64,000 bases of DNA from Stylophora pistillata. Its lineage: Eukaryota. This document shows positions 1 to 44,873 of this stretch, piece after piece. The notes beneath the pieces were generated by a model that was not told the origin of the DNA, did not search any database, and saw only the letters and a list, made by a program, of their open reading frames with translations. Position numbers and translations under genes: made by a program. The DNA is taken from assembly GCF_002571385.2 (NCBI RefSeq), contig NW_019217919.1, positions 168,265 through 232,264 on the forward strand, read 5' to 3'. Numbering within the stretch: the stretch's first letter is position 1; each line of letters opens with the position of its first letter.

Positions 1-630
1 TATAGCAAATTCTATTTTTCGAATGAAATTCCTTTCTTTTATTCAAGCCATGGGGTGCCAAAGAGAACAACTGAGCACTCCAATAAGCCCCTTTTGTGAT
101 TAAAAGCCTATCGATCTCTTCAGAGCCGCTAGGAGCCTGTACCTGGTCAACGCATTGGAACGAAAAATCGTCCAGGGTGTGTGGGGTTTTGTTAAAGTGT
201 ATCACTACTTCACAAGTTGTTTTTTGCATAGCAGATTTGTGATTTCGAAATCTAACTTTAAAGTCAGTAGTAGTAGATCCCACGTATTGCAGGCGACATT
301 TCTTGCAAGAAGCCAAGTAAATCACATTTTTAGAATCACAGAAAAGTCTAGAGTCAATGGTGTAATTTTTGCCTGTCTGAAAGCTGAGAAATGATTTAGA
401 TTCAACAAAGAAATTATGACAGAGATCACATCTTTTCCTATCGCATTTAAAGCAGCCATTGTTATGAGGAATGGTTTGTCTCTCACTGGCAGTTTTAAAA
501 CGAGATGGTGCTAACAATTCTTTGAGATTTTTCAATCGACAAAAAGATGGTATGATAGCACTTCAAGGAAACAGTTCTTTCAATTTGGGGTTAGATTGCA
601 TTTATTTTTATATACATTGCCAAAACACCT
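1..630 (-). mobile_element. Penelope-like retroelement fragment (Zn-knuckle + GIY-YIG endonuclease end), degenerate, inside an FA2H intron
   Basis: Minus-strand translation NLKELLAPSRF...GCFKCDRKRCDLC...KNVIYLASCKKCRLQYVGST...RFRNHKS...W..QL...PHGLN, typical of a PLE C-terminus; interrupted frame. Confidence 0.75.
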
Positions 631-16834: not shown

Positions 16835-18722
16835 ATGGCGTCAGGAAAGAGTTCCAAATTTGACAAAGTTCTTGTCGTTGTGGGCGCAGTCGTGAGCATA
16901 AATGTAGTTTCAATCATTGGAACCTACTTCTTGGACATAAAGGAGAAAACTAAGTATAAACTTATCCTGATTCAAAGCTTGCTGGCAACACAATCGCTCT
17001 TGTTTTTCACATCAAGATATTTATGGTTACGTTTATGTTCTCCACTTTTCAATTCTCCTTCCGTTCAAAACAGAATTATTTTCCTTCTTTTGATCGTGGT
17101 TCTCATCTTAGCCCAAGGAAGTATTATGCTGGGGACTATATTTTCTGGAGTTGAGCCGCATTGGATTTCTTTGTTGTCTTACATATGTTTAGGATTATTT
17201 GTACTGTTGACAACGGCGACTTTTCTTTCTGATTTCGTGACGTGGCTGTTTGGAGCTGTAAACACGCGTTCCGGTTCACTTACAACAAAGTCACGCTATG
17301 CAAGATTTCACGTCATCGGAATCATCATTATTTCATGTGTATTGGCGATGGTAGCACTACATAATGGCCTCAAAGAACCGCTCGTGAAGAACATCAAACT
17401 ACCCGTTAAGAATCTTCCTCCAGAATTAAATGGATTCACAATTGTTCACCTTCCTGATCTGCACGTTGGGCCCACTGTAGGGAAGGCCATGCTGGAAAAA
17501 ACAGTTCGAGCAGCAAATCAATTAAACCCAGATGTTATTGCCTTAACTGGAGATCTGGTTGATTCAACTGTGTATCAGATTCGACAGGCAGTAAAACCAC
17601 TGCTTAAGTTAAAAGCAAGATATGGTGTTTATTTTGTGACAGGTATAGAGAAAATACTCTGCAGTTTGCTTTTTTAAGTGGTCCTTTAGTTCCAGTCATC
17701 CAAGTCAATTACTCTGCTACTGCTGGTGCTTATCCCAAAATAAAATGACCAGGAGTACAAAATTACTACCTCTCCAAGATGGGAAACTCAGGTTCATCAT
17801 AGGTACCTTCCTGGCAATTTGTCAAGTTTTCCTGGTAGTTTGTTAGTATTCATTCACACTCTTGAAATGTGAAAGGTACAGCAAGAGTCTAGTGATATTC
17901 CTAATAGCAGACACTTTGACCAAGCGAGGGCGTAAAACAGGACCTTTCAATTCAAAGTCCTTTTTTTGATCTTGATTCCAGGTTGAACATACACAACAGT
18001 CCCCTTGTTACATACTAGAGAAAGGTACATGATAAGTGAGTGTGGAGACTATCAATATGATGTGCTTTTCATTTGTTAGGAAACCACGAGTATTACACTG
18101 GTGATGTTGATGGTTGGCTAAAAGAGCTGGAATATCTTGGTGTGACACCTCTGCACAATTCTCATGTTATGTTAACACATCCGGACAAGCCCCATGCAAA
18201 AATTTTCCTCGCTGGTGTAGATGATGTAGAAGGTGGATTTCTGAGGTGTGTTATCTAATGATGATACATTTTTACTGTTTAATTTTGTAATTGTCATTAT
18301 AATTGCAAATTGCTATGGGTACTTTAGAAATGAAATTTAGCTGAATTCTAATATAAACTTAAGGCATAAAATAATTTTCTCTTCAAATTAGATCTGGAGA
18401 TCACGGTAGTGATTTAACCAAAGCACTGAAAGGAGTTGACAAAAACATTCCTACAATTCTACTTGCTCACAGACCTAAAGTAGCTAAGCTTGCCTTGGAT
18501 GATTACAGTGTAGATGTTGTCCTTGCTGGCCATACACATGGAGGGCAGTTATTTCCAATACATCTGTGGCACTTGGTCAGGGAACCATACTTTGCAGGAT
18601 TGTACCAACATAAGTCAGGATCATATGTTTATGTATCTAGTGGAGTCCATTTCTGGGGCATGCCAATGAGATTATGGTCTGAGGCAGAAATCACTCATGT
18701 CACTTTAACTACTACAAGTTAA
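16835..18722 (+). CDS. TMPPE: Transmembrane protein with metallophosphoesterase domain; exons 16835-17642, 18080-18245, 18392-18722
   Basis: Multiple N-terminal TM helices; calcineurin-like motifs DLH, TGDLVD, GNHEYY, LLAH, AGHTHGGQ; reading frame is continuous across GT-AG introns. Confidence 0.92.
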
Positions 18723-31207: not shown

Positions 31208-32424
31208 AAAAACCAAGCCCAAGTGGTAGTGGCCATCATAACATTAAGAATGAGGATGACAAGAAAGAGTTCTTTGACTCCTCAGAAGAGCTGGAGCAAA
31301 AGATTGATCTTCTTGCAAAATGGGTCAAGGAGAGTAAACACTGTGTTATGTTCACTGGTGCAGGAATCAGCACAAGCACAGGTATCCCAGATTTTCGAAG
31401 TGGCATGAACACTGTGCTGAAGACAGGCCCTGGTTTATGGGAGTTACAAGCTAAAGGCGTCACTCGCCAGCCAGGTAAAGTTACTCCCATGTTAAAGGCA
31501 ATACCCTCGCCTTCCCACATGGCCATCGTGAAACTCCACAAGGAAGGGTTGGTAAAGTTCACTGTCAGCCAAAATGTTGATGGTCTCCACTTGCGCAGTG
31601 GTATTCCCAGTGAGGAGCTTGCTGAACTTCATGGAAATACCAACTTAGAAAAGTGCACTACCTGTGGTGCTAAATATTTGAGAGATTTTGACACAAGAAC
31701 TGCAACAAGAGTTCATGACCACTTGACTGGAAGGTCCTGTGATAACATCAAGTGCTGTGGACCTTTAGTGGACTCCATTATAAACTTTGGCGAGAGTCTG
31801 CCCGATGATGACCTGATGAAGTCATACCAAGAAGCTGAAAAGTCAGACTTGATGATTGCACTTGGATCCAGTCTTCAGGTTTATCCAGCTGCAGACATTC
31901 CAGCCACTGTCATCCGCAGCAAACAGAAACTGGTGATCTGCAATTTGCAGAAGACCCCACTCAGTTCACTGAGTTCGCTTCACATACACAGTCAGATAGA
32001 TACAGTAATGAGAGGGCTTATGGAGAGGCTTGGCTTGGAGATTCCACCCTTCAGAGTTCAGCGTCGCTTTGCAGTTGAGACAAGTCAGGATAAAATGTTG
32101 ATTGAAGGCCTTGACCTTCAAAGCAACACTCCATATTCTTTCTTAAAACAGGTATCTGTGCATATGTCACAGGAGGTTGAAGGTACAAAGAAAGTTATTG
32201 ATGAAAAAATTCTCTCTAAGGAGCCTCTGGAAATGTGTTTCAGGGGAAGCTTAATAAGTATCTCACAAGCTACTCCATTGATTGCAGAGATAGAGTTGGG
32301 TTTCCAGGGTCACTATGGTGAACCAAGCTTGTCCTTTACCAATTCTATTAGTAGCTTTGGAAAGGCCTTCTTTCATGCAGAGTATGATTTAAATAAAGGG
32401 GAGTGGTCGCTGAAAAAAGAATGA
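31208..32424 (+). CDS. Class IV (SIRT6/7-like) NAD-dependent deacylase, copy 1; large terminal exon lacking its own suitable start codon
   Basis: FTGAGISTSTGIPDFR, SQNVDGLH, ELHGN, CxxC/CxxxxC zinc ligands, DSIINFGE, LGSSL, NLQKT, C-terminal FQGHYGEP; frame is open upstream of the listed ATG (KKEFFDSSEELEQKIDLLAKWVKESK). Confidence 0.92.
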
Positions 32425-34552: not shown

Positions 34553-35502
34553 CCCGGTCTCGAATGTTAGATCGTGGTAAATCAACGTTTATATTAGAGA
34601 ATATAAACAATACTGTGACACAAATATCTAAGTTTAATCGAAACCGTAATTAAATATTCGCTGTGTAGTGTAATTTGTAAAAACTAGCTACTGGGCGTTG
34701 AATTTTGTCATGCTTTTCGCTTTCTTCCTTTTTCTCAATTTCGGTTAAGTCCGGTTCTATACGGAAATATATATATTTCAATATTTCAAGTATTTTTTTT
34801 TCCAATTTTTCATTCGTATATTTTTTTCTAAATGAGAAACAGATGAAATTCCACCGCTGGCCGGGAGCTTCGCAGATAACACGAAATTGGCGCGAAGACT
34901 TGTCCGGTGTCTTAGGGCAAAGGGGACAGAGGTGGGGAGGTATTGGCGAGAGGCAATCAATATATTACTCAATTATATTTATTTAATGTGAGTAGTTAGA
35001 TATTGTGCACAGAGACTGAGTTCAATGTTAAAATTTATCAATTAACTTTAAACCTGTTTTGTCAGACAGAGTATGAAATTGTACTTTTCCATAGAAGTTG
35101 CCTAAACTGTTACAAAGAAAGTAGTAGCTAGCAATCACTTGAACCCTATGCACTGTGATTATTAGTTGGGTGAGATGGACGAAAAGTTTGTTGAAATTGT
35201 TTTGGTGGTTAAATAGGGGTGTGATCACCGGCAATCTTCCCCATTACCCAAATCTCGAGATCCCTGGTTCACCAATGGTGAAACTTCAAAGACCATGCAC
35301 CAAAAGAAGTCAAATGGTACATTACCGCTGGAAACAGAACCAGTTGTGTGAGACAACAACAAAATTTTAACTTTAAAACTTAGTTGTTAAACTTCTGGCA
35401 GCACACACAACTGAAAATCATGGTAAAAGTCAGCTCTTTATTTTTTTTTTTCTGTTGGTGATTTTTTATTCAGTTAAACTTTTTATCATCAGCTCTGTCA
35501 AC

Positions 35503-36909
35503 ATGGCAGTAAATTTCACACCCAAAAAATCAAATTTGAAGGCGTCTGGATCGTCCATGGAAGCAATGTTTGCCAAAGCTCAGAAAACCCAAGCTGCTCT
35601 TCAAAAAGACTACAAGAATGCCCCAACAACCTCGCCTAGCAAAGCTGGTTCAAAAGCTCCCAAACCAAGACAAGGGAAGGCTTCAGGCTCAAAACCATCT
35701 CATGGTCCTGCTGCTTCCAAACCAAAACCAAGATCAAATGCAATTTCAAGTGAGTTTGAGAAGAAGGAGTATTTTGATGAAGAAGATTTGCTGTCAGAAA
35801 AGATCCAGGTTCTGGCTCAGTGGATCCGTGAAAGTAGATACTGTATTGTTTTTACAGGCGCTGGTATTAGCACAAGTACTGGTATTCCTGATTTTAGGAG
35901 TGGTGTGAACACAGTCCTCACCACTGGCCCAGGGGTGTGGGAGCGCAAGGCTCATGGCATCAAGTTACCCTCACAGCAAAAAAAAGTACAAAGTGTATTG
36001 AAGGCTGTGCCATCACCATCACATATGGCAATAGTTAAGCTTGTGAGGGAAGGCCTAGTGAAGTTTGTGGTGAGCCAAAATACTGATGGCCTGCACAGGC
36101 GATCAGGCCTCAATCCCAGGTGCCTTGCTGAGCTGCATGGTAATACAAATATGGAACACTGTCTAAAGTGTGGGTCAAAGTTCATGCGTGACTTTAGAAC
36201 CCGTACAGCCAAAACTGTACATGACCACTTGACAGGCCGTACCTGTGATGACCCCAATTGCCACGGGCCTCTTGCTGACTCCATAATAAACTTTAATGAA
36301 GACCTACCAGAGGATGAACTAGACAGTGCATTTGAAAATGCAAAACTTTCAGATCTATGCATAGTTTTGGGGTCAAGCCTTAGGGTTTACCCAGCTGCTG
36401 ACATACCAGGGGACATGATCAAAAGAGGAGCTAAAGTGGTCATTGTGAACCTTCAGAAGACACCTTTCAACAAAAGATGTGCTTTGGAAGTTCACTCTAC
36501 AATTGATGTTGTTTTACTCAAACTTTTGAAAGAATTAGGCCTTGAAGTGCCACAGTTTCAGCTTAAACGATGCTTCCAAGTGGATGTCAGGAATGACTCA
36601 CTGGTGATTCAAGGACTGGATCCAGCCACAAAAAAACCCTACTCATTTTTGAAACAAGTGAAATTTGAGATTCCTTCTCTTAGGATAGATAAAAAAGTGA
36701 TGAGGGAGCCCTTTGAAGTCAAGTTCCCCAGGAGAGTAGTTCTGTCCAAGGAGAATCCAATGCCCATAAGTCTTACTCTGAGCTTTCAGGGGCATTATGG
36801 GGAACCTCACTTGAAAATTGGAAAGAACATGGAAGAAGTTGGACTGATTGTCTTCTTGCTTACTTTTGATGTCACCACAGTTGAGTGGGAAACTGAGGTC
36901 TTGGAGTAA
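35503..36909 (+). CDS. Class IV (SIRT6/7-like) NAD-dependent deacylase, copy 2; intronless CDS with a K/S/P/A-rich basic N-terminal tail
   Basis: ATG at 35503 (AACATGG); same complete sirtuin motifs and FQGHYGEP tail as copy 1. Confidence 0.93.
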   Translation: MAVNFTPKKSNLKASGSSMEAMFAKAQKTQAALQKDYKNAPTTSPSKAGSKAPKPRQGKASGSKPSHGPAASKPKPRSNAISSEFEKKEYFDEEDLLSEKIQVLAQWIRESRYCIVFTGAGISTSTGIPDFRSGVNTVLTTGPGVWERKAHGIKLPSQQKKVQSVLKAVPSPSHMAIVKLVREGLVKFVVSQNTDGLHRRSGLNPRCLAELHGNTNMEHCLKCGSKFMRDFRTRTAKTVHDHLTGRTCDDPNCHGPLADSIINFNEDLPEDELDSAFENAKLSDLCIVLGSSLRVYPAADIPGDMIKRGAKVVIVNLQKTPFNKRCALEVHSTIDVVLLKLLKELGLEVPQFQLKRCFQVDVRNDSLVIQGLDPATKKPYSFLKQVKFEIPSLRIDKKVMREPFEVKFPRRVVLSKENPMPISLTLSFQGHYGEPHLKIGKNMEEVGLIVFLLTFDVTTVEWETEVLE

Positions 36910-39904: not shown

Positions 39905-40600
39905 TGTTTATTTATAGTAATAATAAGACTTTATTTATTGAGGATAGCACGTGATAGTGCACAAACACTAATAAACTTGTGGTCCTCTTAATTACAATAA
40001 ATATATAAATGCAAATACAATAGAATCACTAATATATTAAGATTACAAATATAAATAGAAATTTAGCTAATTACAAATAATATTTAATTGATAAAATATA
40101 TAATACAAGATAATATAAACAAGTAAGAATATATAAAACTACTATCAATAAAATTTACCGATTAAAATGAGCTAAGCATGATTTGTCATCATAATAATAT
40201 TTAAATACGTTGTCTTTAAAGGCCTTAAGTGTATTAGACTTTTTTAATTCAGGCTTTAACTGATTCCATAATTTTATGGCAGAAACTAGAAAAGTTTTCC
40301 CTCCTTCTCTAGCCCTTTTAAACTTAGGTAATAAAAAGTTGTATTTACAAAATCTAGTGTTGCGTGAATGTACTGAACTTAATAATCTTAAGCTATCATT
40401 AAGATAATTAGGTACACAATAATTAATCCTTTTAAATAGTATTGAACATTTAGCTATCTTAGTAGAGTTATAAAATGGTATCCACTTTAAACGATTGAAT
40501 AGCATAACTGATGAACTACGTGGTTCAGCATCTAATAAAACCCTAGCAGCTCTCTTTTGTAGCCTAAGTATTCTTAAAAGAGATTCATTAGAATAGCATA
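39905..40600 (-). mobile_element. 3' end of a non-LTR retrotransposon upstream of the NLR
   Basis: LRLQKRAARVLLDA...LFNRLKWIPF...HSRNTR...GGKTFLVSAIKLWNQL; AATAAA-rich tail. Confidence 0.85.
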
Positions 40601-41126
40601 CCTCGACTCAATTTCAGTTTATAGAAAGGAGTATCTTTACGATTTGAATGGCGAAAATTGATTCGCTTTATTGACGATTGTTGGAAAGCCTTCAAACTGA
40701 GCAAGAAGCTCTGGCCTTAGGAAAAGGCGTGGGTGAAGGGAGAATTTTCAGTGACAGCTCACATTTCTTTTAGTGGTGACGCGCTATTTGCATAAGAAGA
40801 GTCTCAGAAAGCGAAATTTCTCGCCATACTTGTAAATGTTCCTTTGGCGCATCCTTGAACGACATTTCATAGAATCTGAACAATAGAAACAATTTTAAAC
40901 AAGCAACACACTTCTGTCCATTTTATTTTCCAGTTTTAGTTTCCAATATCAGCTTACCGCTAAGTCGAGAAAATGATGGCTTGCGAAAACAAAACAATGA
41001 CAGCCATAAGTTTGCCAAGAGGTTAAATTGTAGTTTCGTCCATAAACTTTAAACCGAAACATTGTGTAACTGGAAGTCCACACCAAAGCTAAAGAGCGAT
41101 TTTCATCTACAAACAATATTGACACG

Positions 41127-44100
41127 ATGGATACTCTCAAGGAATCACTTGCACCAAAAACCTTCAACAAAATTAGCCATCTCGCAGTTTTAGTTTGGTT
41201 TGTGATCGGTGCAATCTTCCTTGGCATTTTTACTGAAGTGGAAAACACCGAATCCAGGTTTGATTTCCGTTGTGGCGGAGCGGAGACCGAAAACACTGAC
41301 CTCGTCCGTGGAGACTGCTTCCAGCAATACGAGGAGCAGTACAACAAATATGGTGTACCTATCTATGGCTTCGTGACCATCAATTTCTTCCTCATTGCAC
41401 TTGTTTGTGCTATTTTCTCCCAAATAGTGAGAAAGACCGTTGATGAACTATCGCCAAGCACTCGTAACGGCGACCGTGAGAGCCAGTCGCGCCACAGAGA
41501 GAAGCAAAAATCAACGGGAAAACAGCTTTTCATCGCTTACTGCTGTCAACTGTCCACAAGACTTGTTTTGGGAGTTCTTTTCATGATCCTTCAAACTCAG
41601 TTGCTTTATCCTTTAAGGTTTCCCTATAAGTTTGACTGTTATTTAACCTCTGGAACCAATCAGCCAAGGAACTTATCTGACGCCGCCCAAAACTCCACTC
41701 AGTTTCACAAATGTAACAATCAACGAGCGGAAAAGAAAACCTTCTGGATGTACGCTGTCCTAGCAGTTAATGGAATTTATGTCGCTGGAATTCTAATTGA
41801 AACCATCTACATTTTGTCACGGGCACGCGTAGAAACGAAGTTCATGAAAAACTCAGAGTTCCTTAAAATTCATCTAAATCCCAACCATGACAAGTCGTAT
41901 CAGGAACCTCAAAAGCAAGAAGGTAGAATACAGGTTGTTGTAATGCAGCCAAGAGTTCATGACAACCTTCCGACGCAACCCGGGTTGCACCCAGAACCTC
42001 AGAGGCAAGATGATGTTGCCCAATCGCAGCCACGAGAGCGAGAACACCGTCCAATCCAAGTCGAAATACACGTACACCCTCAAAAGCAAGATGATGTTAT
42101 TCCACCACACCCAAGAGAGCAAGAACACCGTCCGACCAAAATGGAGTCTTACCAAGAACCTCAAAGACAAAATGATGTTGTCCCACTACCGCCACGAGAC
42201 CAAATCGGGTCGCATCAAGAACCTCAACAGCCAGAGGGAAGGAGTGAACATGATATTATTTCTCCAGTGCAAAGGGAACCCGAACAGCTCCAAAACTCGA
42301 ATCTACAACTATTCATCGCCGAAACAAAGAAAATAATTAAAGAAAATACCCAACACCTTTTTGAACTCCAACCACCGTTTTTAGGAAACCCAGGCGAGCA
42401 AACGGCAGTTAAATATTTCACTCTGGATCAGATCTACACAAATCTTGTGGTCGTTCCAAATAGAGCTACATATGACTTTACTGCAAACAGAGAGGAGCAA
42501 CTCAAAGTTTATCCAAGGCCGCGCACGGAATCACAACTTAAAAGCCTGGAAGACCTCCTAAATGATAAAAGTAAAAAGGTTCTGATTGTCGGTCGCCCCG
42601 GAATCGGTAAGACATTTTGTTGTACTAAACTTCTCAGAAATTGGGCGTGTAAAGAAGTTTCTGAAATCCATTTTGATCCTGCTTTCTTAATAAAATTTAG
42701 AAGATTCAACTCAGACAACCACCTTAGCCTCAGGGAACTGTTGGTTCAGTCAGAGCATTTTCCTTCAGATCACCTGGATGATGAAGTCTGGAAATACATC
42801 CTGCAGCACCCTGAAAGTGTACTTATTCTTTTCGACGGATTTGATGAATTCAATCACAACGCAAACATCATCCAGTGGCCGGCCTCTAGTCCCAAAAGCA
42901 TTGAACAGAAGGTGCCTCTCCAAAGCCTCTATTACTGGCTTGTGACCGGGAAACTACTAAAAAATGCTTTAATTTTGACAACCACGAGACCAACGGCTTT
43001 GTCGAGCATCAAACGCCTTCCGTTCGACAAAACCTGCGAAATTCTGGGCTTCACAACCGAGCAAATTAAAGAATATGTCTCCAGATTTTGCGGAGATGAC
43101 AAGCAAGCAGGCGAAAGACTATGGCGACACATCAGCAGCAACATGAACTTACTTTCGCTCTGTTATATCCCCGTGAATAGCTTCATCATGTGCTCAAGTC
43201 TGTTCGAAATATTGCAGTTCGAAAGTTCCGCTAGTGCTACCCTCCCTTCCGAATTAACAACCCTTTACATGATTGCAGTGACCGTGTTTTACCTTAAACA
43301 CACAAAAGAATTCCGCGATAATGAGTCCACTCGCGAACACTTAGATTACAATAACTTGCCACCAGAAGTGGAGGAGAAATTCGAGAAACTTGGAAAAGTG
43401 GCGTTTGAAGGAATTAAAAAAGGAAAGCTGATCCTTGGAGGAAACGAAGTACGCGGGATGGAAGACAGCGCTCTCTTTCACCGCCTACCCGACTGTCGAA
43501 GTGATGCGTTAAAACGCGAACCACAATTCTGTTTCATTCATCTCACAATGCAGGAGTTTTTCGCTGCAAGGCACCTAGCGAACAACGTGAGTGAAACAGA
43601 ATTGAGGAACTTTGTTACAAAGAACAGCGAGAACGGCAAATGGCAACTAGTGATTCAGTTTCTAGCAGGACTAATGAACGATAAAGATGAACTACCGAGC
43701 GAAATTATCACCGACCTTCTTCCTGTGGAAACTGAAGAGGAAGAACGCTATGACGACGACGAACAGACAGGGAATGAAGAGGAATGGAAAGTAACCTGTT
43801 GGCCGACTAAGGACAAAAGAGATTTGGCAGTGACACTGTGTAAATGTGTAAACGAAAGTAAAAAGATGGAAATCATAGTCCAAAGAAAGCTACAACAAAT
43901 TAACTTTAATTGTGTAAATTTTATTGCAAGTCACCTCACAGCTGTGGAATGCTCTTCGTTAATAAATGTAATTAAGAATATTGAACAAATTTCACATTTA
44001 GATTTGATGGACAATAACATGGACTCATTAGGCTGTCTCGAGATTGCTAAATTGTTAATATATTGGAAATGTCGACTAAGCTGGTTAAACCTCGCAGAGA

Positions 44101-44873
44101 ATCAACTGACAGACGAAGCAGTAAAGCATTTAGCTAACGCCATCACAAACAACAACTGTCAGCTACGCTCGTTAAACCTCTCAGAAAATAACATCACAGA
44201 CACAGGAGCACAGCACTTGGCTGAAGCCATCACAAACAACAACTGTCAGCTACGCTCGTTAAACCTCTCAGAAAATAACATCACAGACACAGGAGCACAG
44301 CACTTGGCTGAAGCCATCACGAACAACAAGTGTCAGCTACACACGTTAAGCCTCTCGTTCAATTACATCACAGTCACAGGAGCACAGCACTTGGCTGAAG
44401 CCATCACAGACAGCTGTCAGCTACGCTCGTTAAACCTCTCAAAAAATAACATCACAGACACAGGAGCACAGTACTTGGCTGACGCCATCACAAAAAACAA
44501 CTTTCAGCTACGCACGTTAAACCTCTCACAAAATAACATCACAGACACAGGAGTACAGCACTTGGCTCACGCCATTACAAGCAACAACTGTCAGCTACAC
44601 ACGTTAAACCTCTCATACAATAACATCACAGACACAGGAGCACAGCACTTGGCTGACGCCATAACAAACAACGACTGTCAGCTACACACGTTAGACCTCT
44701 TAGGCAATAACATCACAGACACAGGAGCACAGCACTTGGCTGACGCCATTACTAACAACAACTGTCAGCTACGCTCGTTAAACCTCTCATACAATAACAT
44801 GACAAAAGTAGGTAAGCAACATGCACGTAATTTAGTGAGCAAGAGTCAGTCTAAGTGTAAGCTAGATATTTAA
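41127..44873 (+). CDS. Single-exon NLR: connexin-like 4TM domain (aa ~1-232), P/Q/E-rich repeat linker, NACHT, RI-like LRRs
   Basis: 1248-aa ORF; four hydrophobic helices; Walker A GRPGIGKT, Walker B LILFDGFDE, sensor TTTRP, LCYIPV, winged-helix FIHLTMQEFFAA; ~10 LRRs of 28 aa. Confidence 0.95.
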   Translation: MDTLKESLAPKTFNKISHLAVLVWFVIGAIFLGIFTEVENTESRFDFRCGGAETENTDLVRGDCFQQYEEQYNKYGVPIYGFVTINFFLIALVCAIFSQIVRKTVDELSPSTRNGDRESQSRHREKQKSTGKQLFIAYCCQLSTRLVLGVLFMILQTQLLYPLRFPYKFDCYLTSGTNQPRNLSDAAQNSTQFHKCNNQRAEKKTFWMYAVLAVNGIYVAGILIETIYILSRARVETKFMKNSEFLKIHLNPNHDKSYQEPQKQEGRIQVVVMQPRVHDNLPTQPGLHPEPQRQDDVAQSQPREREHRPIQVEIHVHPQKQDDVIPPHPREQEHRPTKMESYQEPQRQNDVVPLPPRDQIGSHQEPQQPEGRSEHDIISPVQREPEQLQNSNLQLFIAETKKIIKENTQHLFELQPPFLGNPGEQTAVKYFTLDQIYTNLVVVPNRATYDFTANREEQLKVYPRPRTESQLKSLEDLLNDKSKKVLIVGRPGIGKTFCCTKLLRNWACKEVSEIHFDPAFLIKFRRFNSDNHLSLRELLVQSEHFPSDHLDDEVWKYILQHPESVLILFDGFDEFNHNANIIQWPASSPKSIEQKVPLQSLYYWLVTGKLLKNALILTTTRPTALSSIKRLPFDKTCEILGFTTEQIKEYVSRFCGDDKQAGERLWRHISSNMNLLSLCYIPVNSFIMCSSLFEILQFESSASATLPSELTTLYMIAVTVFYLKHTKEFRDNESTREHLDYNNLPPEVEEKFEKLGKVAFEGIKKGKLILGGNEVRGMEDSALFHRLPDCRSDALKREPQFCFIHLTMQEFFAARHLANNVSETELRNFVTKNSENGKWQLVIQFLAGLMNDKDELPSEIITDLLPVETEEEERYDDDEQTGNEEEWKVTCWPTKDKRDLAVTLCKCVNESKKMEIIVQRKLQQINFNCVNFIASHLTAVECSSLINVIKNIEQISHLDLMDNNMDSLGCLEIAKLLIYWKCRLSWLNLAENQLTDEAVKHLANAITNNNCQLRSLNLSENNITDTGAQHLAEAITNNNCQLRSLNLSENNITDTGAQHLAEAITNNKCQLHTLSLSFNYITVTGAQHLAEAITDSCQLRSLNLSKNNITDTGAQYLADAITKNNFQLRTLNLSQNNITDTGVQHLAHAITSNNCQLHTLNLSYNNITDTGAQHLADAITNNDCQLHTLDLLGNNITDTGAQHLADAITNNNCQLRSLNLSYNNMTKVGKQHARNLVSKSQSKCKLDI
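44085..44800 (+). repeat. 84-bp coding tandem repeat (LRR array)
   Basis: Unit CAGCTACGCTCGTTAAACCTCTCA...AACATCACAGACACAGGAGCACAGCACTTGGCTGAAGCCATCACA repeated about 8 times. Confidence 0.95.

Follow-up and report, generated by a model that had tools for sequence, protein, structure and literature searches.

Connexins have long been held to be an invention of the chordates, and the locus described here raises the question whether a genuine relative of these large-pore channels occupies the N-terminal effector position of a coral immune receptor, and what it might do there. The locus lies in a 64,000-nucleotide stretch of the Stylophora pistillata genome (assembly GCF_002571385.2, contig NW_019217919.1, positions 168,265 to 232,264 of the forward strand), which we call the window and within which all nucleotide positions are counted. 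An earlier note, made from the DNA letters, had described one of its genes as a connexin-like channel domain fused to a NACHT domain and leucine-rich repeats (LRRs). According to our analysis, this gene very probably encodes a membrane-embedded NLR (nucleotide-binding domain and LRR-containing receptor) of the anthozoan connexin-like (CxL)-NLR class, in which a connexin-homologous channel domain is followed by a tether, a NACHT domain, and LRRs.

The coding region consists of one unbroken open reading frame (ORF) on the plus strand (41127..44873), which encodes 1248 amino acids (aa) from an ATG start and is preceded by an in-frame stop 27 codons 5' of this ATG. The continuous frame and the Pfam domains of its product bear out the earlier placement of a transmembrane (TM) domain in the effector slot of a NACHT-LRR protein. 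Residues 1–1230 are identical to the Stylophora pistillata protein PFX26007.1 (UniProt A0A2B4SBP4, "Protein NLRC3", 1247 aa), and the same architecture recurs in many Stylophora and Pocillopora proteins with 60–77% identity. A chordate scaffold, which the note had named as a reason for abandoning its interpretation, is not what we found: by its identity to A0A2B4SBP4 the DNA is that of a stony coral. We therefore rejected chordate origin or contamination, since the matching S. pistillata protein is encoded on a contig of 641 kb and the nearest relatives of the product are Pocillopora proteins. Over 44817–44873 the ORF and the deposited model disagree in the C-terminal 17–18 residues. Judging from the two translations, the A0A2B4SBP4 model evidently uses another C-terminal end, and because of this difference the C-terminus, or last splice, given here for the gene is provisional.

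The four-TM domain at aa 1–235 is a genuine remote homolog of connexins. As a single sequence, the protein matches the Pfam family Connexin (PF00029) with 28.2 bits (E 1.9e-6), whereas no match to the innexin, pannexin-like, or CALHM families of Pfam was obtained for it at E≤10, nor in 25 relatives at E≤0.01. Relatives were gathered by two word-indexed searches (246 and 29 matches) and then by an exhaustive HMMER search, in which the CxL family comprised 306 representatives at E≤1e-3. For comparison with PDB a family profile was required, since a single-sequence phmmer search with aa 1–248 returned nothing meaningful; a profile of the full-length alignment was swamped by NACHT-LRR matches and uninformative on the TM domain. 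We therefore rely on a profile of 25 short and diverse sequences comprising the CxL domain only (identity down to 24%). All 31 PDB sequences matched by this profile at E<1e-3 are connexins, with GJC3/Cx31.3 as the best match (E 3.3e-8) and GJB1/Cx32 (E 3.5e-6) aligned from TM1 to TM4, and the top non-connexin reached an E-value of only 0.26. Moreover, when searched singly, 20 of the 25 profile members matched PF00029, the best with an E-value of 1.5e-8; any further family was matched by one member at most. The Pfam and HMMER comparison proposed in the note thus returned connexins and no innexin, pannexin, or CALHM proteins, and the alignments reproduce the correspondences to human Cx26 that it had drawn for aa 1–232. 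In TM3, LFIAY..QL..R aligns with the connexin motif LWWTY..S..FR; at the transition from loop 2 to TM4, C..QRA.KKTF...NG...E..Y.L aligns with CFVSRPTEKT.F...SG...E..YL; and in loop 1, F.C is paired with the connexin F.C and C..QY with CYDQF.

Structure prediction led to the same family. Four hydrophobic segments (aa 17–40, 78–103, 134–156, and 205–230) are apparent in the domain. The AlphaFold2 (AF2) model, which was built on an alignment of 91 sequences and attained a predicted local distance difference test score (pLDDT) of 88.7 and a predicted template modeling score (pTM) of 0.82, places four TM helices behind an N-terminal helix, gives loop 1 a short strand and loop 2 a beta-hairpin, and can be superposed on solved connexins; it thereby shows the features that define the connexin fold. 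All of the top 50 Foldseek matches in PDB were connexins (E down to 1.2e-5, TM-score ≤0.74), as were already all matches of a first, poor model from 13 sequences (pLDDT 56). The top five matches of VIA-align, which is independent of Foldseek, were likewise connexins (Z 14.4–15.6, 16–21% identity), followed by LRRC8A (Z 14.2 over 219 residues), pannexins (11.3–12.8), and INX-6 (10.6), all with 8–11% identity. In the monomer comparison suggested in the note, connexins thus ranked first in both programs. As this fold is common to all large-pore channels, however, it is sequence and not fold that singles out the connexins.

The finding has already been made by others, even for this individual protein. 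In a preprint of 15 June 2026, Butler et al. (bioRxiv 10.64898/2026.06.13.731801) described CxL domains from anthozoans as well as from an annelid and a brachiopod. These domains have two cysteines per loop, are present with up to 100 copies in a genome, and mostly lie N-terminally on NLRs encoded by typically single-exon genes; among anthozoan CxL proteins, 92% carry the NLR fusion. HHpred assigned CxL to 6L3U with 99.95% probability, and clustering tied CxLs to connexins and not to innexins, with epsilon-clade connexins also possessing two-cysteine loops (Butler et al., 2026). In the supplement, S. pistillata is assigned 22 CxL genes and a single innexin, and A0A2B4SBP4_STYPI (1247 aa) is included with IPR038359, NACHT, and LRR entries; connexin annotations on cnidarian NLRs, and their expression in coral immune cells, are credited to still earlier papers (Butler et al., 2026). 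InterPro likewise tags A0A2B4SBP4 with IPR038359. The possibility raised in the note that the connexin identity might be new has thus to be given up. Its proposal that the connexin fold may predate the chordates is supported by the homologous domain in an expressed NACHT-LRR protein of a stony coral, and a connexin-type effector module in coral NLRs shifts the family's origin to the ancestor of cnidarians and bilaterians. This module also links large-pore channels to innate immunity, an advance already made in the preprint; what the window contributes is a full-length example, verified and expressed, of a protein type that is no longer new.

Regarding the cysteines, the connexin likeness claimed earlier holds for the domain as a whole and fails for the three cysteines that connexins have in each loop. 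Only C49, C64, C171, and C196 are conserved in the family, two per loop, and alignment with Cx32 showed that the middle cysteine of each connexin triplet is the one absent. In the crystal structure of Cx26 the disulfides are C53–C180, C60–C174, and C64–C169. On the basis of this pairing the two absent cysteines would be mutual partners, and their loss would leave two inter-loop bridges intact, which homology predicts to be C49–C196 and C64–C171. Loop 2 exceeds its connexin counterpart in length, and two N-glycosylation sequons (N182, N189) lie between its invariant cysteines. These sequons suggest that loop 2 is non-cytosolic, and therefore that both termini, including the NACHT-LRR part, face the cytosol. 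The N-terminal helix pattern M..K..L.PK.F is kept across the CxL family, and five of the first 16 residues are charged (D2, K5, E6, K11, K15). By analogy, this charged N-terminus may resemble the charged helix that the preprint ties to voltage sensitivity.

Behind the channel domain, the protein is a complete NLR. The NACHT domain (PF05729) was found by Pfam with an E-value of 3.8e-29, above its cut-off, and contains an intact Walker A motif (GRPGIGKT, aa 489–496) as well as an intact Walker B-like motif (LILFDGFDE, aa 566–574). The C-terminal leucine-rich repeats typical of NLRs are matched by LRR_6 in seven stretches (E 2.5e-34) and also by LRR_1. With a profile of full-length relatives, NLRP3, NLRP5, and others in PDB could be aligned to the NACHT-LRR part over approximately 600 residues (E 1e-87 to 1e-97). 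At the DNA level, the LRR region forms a tandem array of an 87-nt unit (8.4 copies, 87% identity, 44076–44804), and this degree of unit identity suggests recent duplication or homogenization of the repeats. From the invariant Glu of TM4 to Walker A the tether measures 264 aa, owing to its low-complexity stretch, compared to 89–275 aa in the family (median ~154). By this count it is among the longest CxL tethers, near the family maximum. The coordinates of all features are given in Table 1.

Table 1. Features of the CxL-NLR gene; nt positions refer to the window, residues to the ORF product.
Feature	Residues (aa)	Position (nt)	Strand	Basis or remark
Complete single-exon connexin-like NLR ORF, 1248 aa + stop	1–1248	41127..44873	+	Equals PFX26007.1 / A0A2B4SBP4 except C-terminal end
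CxL four-TM domain	1–235	41127..41831	+	Pfam Connexin, PDB profile, AF2, Foldseek, VIA-align
N-terminal helix	2–7			AF2
TM1	15–41			AF2
Loop 1	42–78			AF2
TM2	79–108			AF2
Cytoplasmic loop	109–132			AF2
TM3	133–160			AF2
Loop 2	161–200			AF2
TM4	201–235			AF2
Loop-1 cysteines (first and last codon of span)	C49, C64	41271..41318	+	Family-invariant; align with Cx32 C53, C64
QLFIAY, start of TM3	133–138	41523..41540	+	Position of KLFIAY/KLFLAY; Gln for Lys
Loop-2 cysteines	C171, C196	41637..41714	+	Align with Cx32 C168, C179; flank sequons N182, N189
Low-complexity tether, P/Q/E/R/H/D-rich	251–402	41877..42332	+	
Conserved pre-NACHT segment	403–484	42333..42578	+	Profile-aligned just N-terminal of NLRP3 NACHT
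NACHT NTPase	485–656	42579..43094	+	Pfam, Walker A/B motifs
NLRC4_HD2-like helical domain	805–871	43539..43739	+	Pfam, sub-threshold
Nine ribonuclease-inhibitor-type LRRs, 29 aa each	984–1243	44076..44855	+	Pfam, 87-nt tandem units

Transcription of the gene is indicated by polyA-RNA contigs from independent studies, one covering 41006–41754 with one mismatch and another 41724–43147 with three mismatches; a third RNA run covers 41705–42333. Transcripts omitting the TM region, which according to the note would have spoken against its interpretation, were not what these data contain, as the contigs cover this region and the longer one bridges TM4 to NACHT. No supported intron joints were present within the ORF in the RNA contigs. 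The upstream flanking stretch 40662–40842 is empty in two of the runs, which argues against plain carry-over of DNA. In two independent runs the contigs begin at 41005/41006, ~120 nt 5' of the ATG and right after an AG, a position that is either the transcription start or the splice acceptor of an intron in the 5' untranslated region (UTR). A separate contig in one run covers 40630–40922. Downstream of the ORF, in the presumed 3' UTR, reads skip 93–95 nt (45128/45130>45224). The LRR array (44076–44804) shows huge read depth with many variants, that is, reads derived from paralogs.

Some CxLs are opened by CO2, which carbamylates a Lys in TM3 that then bridges to an Arg in TM4 (Butler et al., 2026). 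The carbamylation motif reads KLFLAY in pmCxL30 (K140) and KLFIAY in pmCxL62 (K130; Supplementary Table 8 of Butler et al., 2026), and the exchange K140R in pmCxL30 abolished CO2 gating while voltage gating was kept (Butler et al., 2026). In the protein described here the Arg of TM4 is present (R232), but the first motif position, occupied by Lys in 26 and by Arg in 24 of 91 relatives, is Q133, so that the Lys characterizing the CO2-gated subgroup is missing. As Gln replaces the residue to be carbamylated, we predict from the sequence that this paralog is insensitive to CO2 by the carbamylation route. K132, one residue before Q133, leaves some doubt on this prediction. The natural change from Lys to Gln would make the protein a convenient negative control for the carbamylation model.

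The gene is one of a larger family in the genome. A search of the S. pistillata assembly with the CxL domain profile yielded 57 matches, approximately 21 of them intact over the full domain and one located in the window; the number of intact copies agrees with the count of CxL genes in the preprint. They are often grouped into small clusters, located on other contigs, and stops are present in several of them. On four contigs (C802, C76, C186, and C440), clustered copies include several that are fragments or have internal stops, which points to ongoing birth and death within the family.

How the protein might work can be derived in part from its relatives. When expressed in HeLa cells, these give rise to hemichannels in the plasma membrane, through which ATP and glutamate are released on depolarization; all tested anthozoan CxLs conducted ATP or glutamate, and the predicted stoichiometry is 6–7 (Butler et al., 2026). 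Relatives with the domain only (pmCxL30) or with domain and NACHT gate without an NLR ligand, and the largest recorded constructs contain NACHT and lack the LRRs (Butler et al., 2026). By extension, the CxL domain of the S. pistillata protein would assemble as a hexameric or heptameric hemichannel in the plasma membrane, and not as a gap junction, and would open on depolarization to let ATP and glutamate out. This paralog would be voltage-sensitive and CO2-insensitive. Beneath the membrane, the channel ring might hold six or seven NACHT-LRR modules, each hanging in the cytosol on its flexible tether, and the nucleotide or ligand state of these modules may modulate opening or downstream signaling rather than build the pore. 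Since domain-only and LRR-less relatives form gated channels, NACHT assembly is not needed for building the pore. In addition, the low-complexity tether varies between 89 and 275 aa in the family, which argues against a rigid mechanical link, though a regulatory coupling may exist.

Several observations weigh against the interpretation of the gene as an expressed, connexin-homologous channel receptor. The single-sequence Pfam match does not reach the gathering score of 31.3 bits and spans profile positions 123–223 of 225, thus TM3–TM4 only. On structure alone, LRRC8A is statistically tied with the connexins, and the cysteine complement falls short of three per loop. A four-copy homo-oligomer prediction of aa 1–245 scored 0.17 against a mark of 0.32, which speaks neither for nor against assembly of the channel. 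The RNA contigs by themselves cannot exclude DNA carry-over, and in a run examined as raw reads the N-terminal half is hardly covered at all, which argues that expression is low or restricted to certain cell types. Furthermore, we found in the literature no channel recordings of this protein or of any full-length CxL-NACHT-LRR.

Two cysteines per loop are the usual pattern of innexins and pannexins, and together with the VIA-align scores of LRRC8A, pannexins, and INX-6 (Z 10.6–14.2) this could be taken to mean that the domain is no connexin at all, being either a four-TM bundle that arose by convergence or one that belongs to the innexin/pannexin/LRRC8 lineage. We consider this very improbable, because the corresponding Pfam families gave no match, the significant PDB profile matches are exclusively connexins, sequence identity to connexins is higher than to any of these channels, and two-cysteine loops also exist within the connexins themselves, to which the preprint's clustering ties the CxLs. 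It is still harder to believe that the ORF is an artefact or a dead gene, its frame running through two genes that have nothing to do with each other. The differing C-terminal 17 aa of the deposited model would fit such an error, and so would one RNA contig with a non-canonical joint (40899>43633). However, this joint was discounted because it derives from a single contig, has 20 nt on the shorter side, and shows CA..GA ends, and a frame open for 1248 aa, an RNA contig linking TM4 to NACHT, and an architecture shared with many Stylophora and Pocillopora proteins all contradict the idea of a fortuitous fusion.

If the domain is accepted as a connexin-type channel, its relation to the NLR part can be viewed in more than one way. 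The earlier note had envisaged a pattern-gated pore. On this view the channel would be the direct effector of the NLR, assembled or opened when the LRRs recognize a ligand and NACHT oligomerizes at the expense of ATP, in analogy to plant CC-NLR resistosomes. The channel domain does sit where an NLR carries its effector, next to intact Walker motifs and LRRs, the fusion is kept in ~21 intact genome copies as well as by 92% of the CxL proteins of anthozoans, and the 6–7 subunits predicted for relatives fall within the range of STAND rings. We nevertheless regard this as unlikely, given that pmCxL30, which has no NACHT, and relatives with NACHT but without LRRs respond to voltage or CO2 without any ligand, that tether length is unconserved and most of the 264 aa here are of low complexity, and that no test of a ligand or of NLR-dependent gating was found in the literature. 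Equally doubtful is the narrower claim that the nucleotide or ligand state of the NACHT-LRR part controls hemichannel opening in the full-length receptor. Were it true, such an NLR-gated hemichannel would directly turn pattern recognition into a flux of ATP, glutamate, or ions across the coral cell membrane, as an animal, connexin-built counterpart of the plant resistosome channels. Alternatively, the four-TM domain might be an anchor or scaffold that mainly tethers and pre-oligomerizes the NLR at the plasma membrane, phagosome, or symbiosome, with conduction irrelevant or lost in this paralog. The absence of the carbamylation Lys, the long flexible tether, and the large, fast-evolving family with its pseudogenized copies would suit this role. 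It appears less probable still, as every tested anthozoan relative conducted ATP or glutamate, and the four cysteines as well as the pattern of the N-terminal helix, a pore-lining element of connexins, are conserved family-wide. We favor a membrane-embedded CxL-NLR whose N-terminal domain would act as a connexin-type hemichannel.

Among known systems, the CxL-NLRs of Butler et al. (2026) are the closest. Like pmCxL30, pmCxL62, and edCxL50, the protein combines an N-terminal CxL domain, NACHT, and LRRs in a single coding exon and has two cysteines per loop; GJC3/Cx31.3 is the top PDB relative in both analyses, and pmCxL62 has the same LFIAY in TM3. It differs in being the full-length NACHT-LRR form, a type outside their functional tests, in its 264-aa tether, and in the Gln in place of the carbamylated Lys. 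With the chordate connexins of PF00029, above all GJC3/Cx31.3 and GJE1/Cx23, the domain has in common the four TM helices, the N-terminal helix, the loop-2 beta-hairpin, and the motifs of TM3 and loop 2/TM4, at significant profile and fold matches; moreover, Cx31.3 forms hemichannels only, which also seems to hold for the anthozoan CxLs. In contrast to chordate connexins, CxL has two cysteines per loop, a longer, sequon-bearing loop 2, and a sub-threshold Pfam score, and a NACHT-LRR part instead of the regulatory C-terminal tail. LRRC8/VRAC (SWELL1) similarly unites a large-pore four-TM domain and a cytosolic C-terminal LRR in one polypeptide, but its pore is of pannexin/innexin descent (9% identity), lacks a sequence-level match, and is not accompanied by NACHT. 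Vertebrate NLRPs (NLRP3, NLRP5) possess NACHT, helical domains, and LRRs of the ribonuclease-inhibitor type as well. Their effector is a PYD or CARD, whereas here it is a membrane channel domain, hence an integral membrane receptor. The likeness to plant CC-NLR resistosomes (ZAR1, Sr35, NRC) is conceptual, in that the N-terminal part of an NLR forms a membrane channel. These soluble receptors insert a funnel of alpha-1 helices only upon activation and have NB-ARC, whereas the coral protein has NACHT and encodes a constitutive four-TM channel fold; the channel parts are non-homologous.

Besides the CxL-NLR gene, several other features of the window deserve mention. Two intron-free ORFs on the plus strand (31348–32424, 358 aa; 35455–36909, 484 aa) share 54% identity and contain complete Sir2-family domains (E 9e-30 and 9e-27, respectively); by these sequence criteria they are tandem sirtuin paralogs, 4–10 kb upstream of the NLR. 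At 40155–40592 the read depth is very high in all four RNA runs, and at 40592 the reads or contigs of every run depart from the window into one and the same foreign sequence. A minus-strand ORF of 116 aa (40155–40505) underlies this stretch, which could represent a transcribed element of repetitive or transposon origin, or else the exon boundary of another gene. Finally, a 280-aa ORF on the plus strand (16835–17677) matches with its C-terminal part the beginning of Metallophos, the family of calcineurin-like phosphoesterases (22.6 bits), and probably represents one exon of a larger gene.

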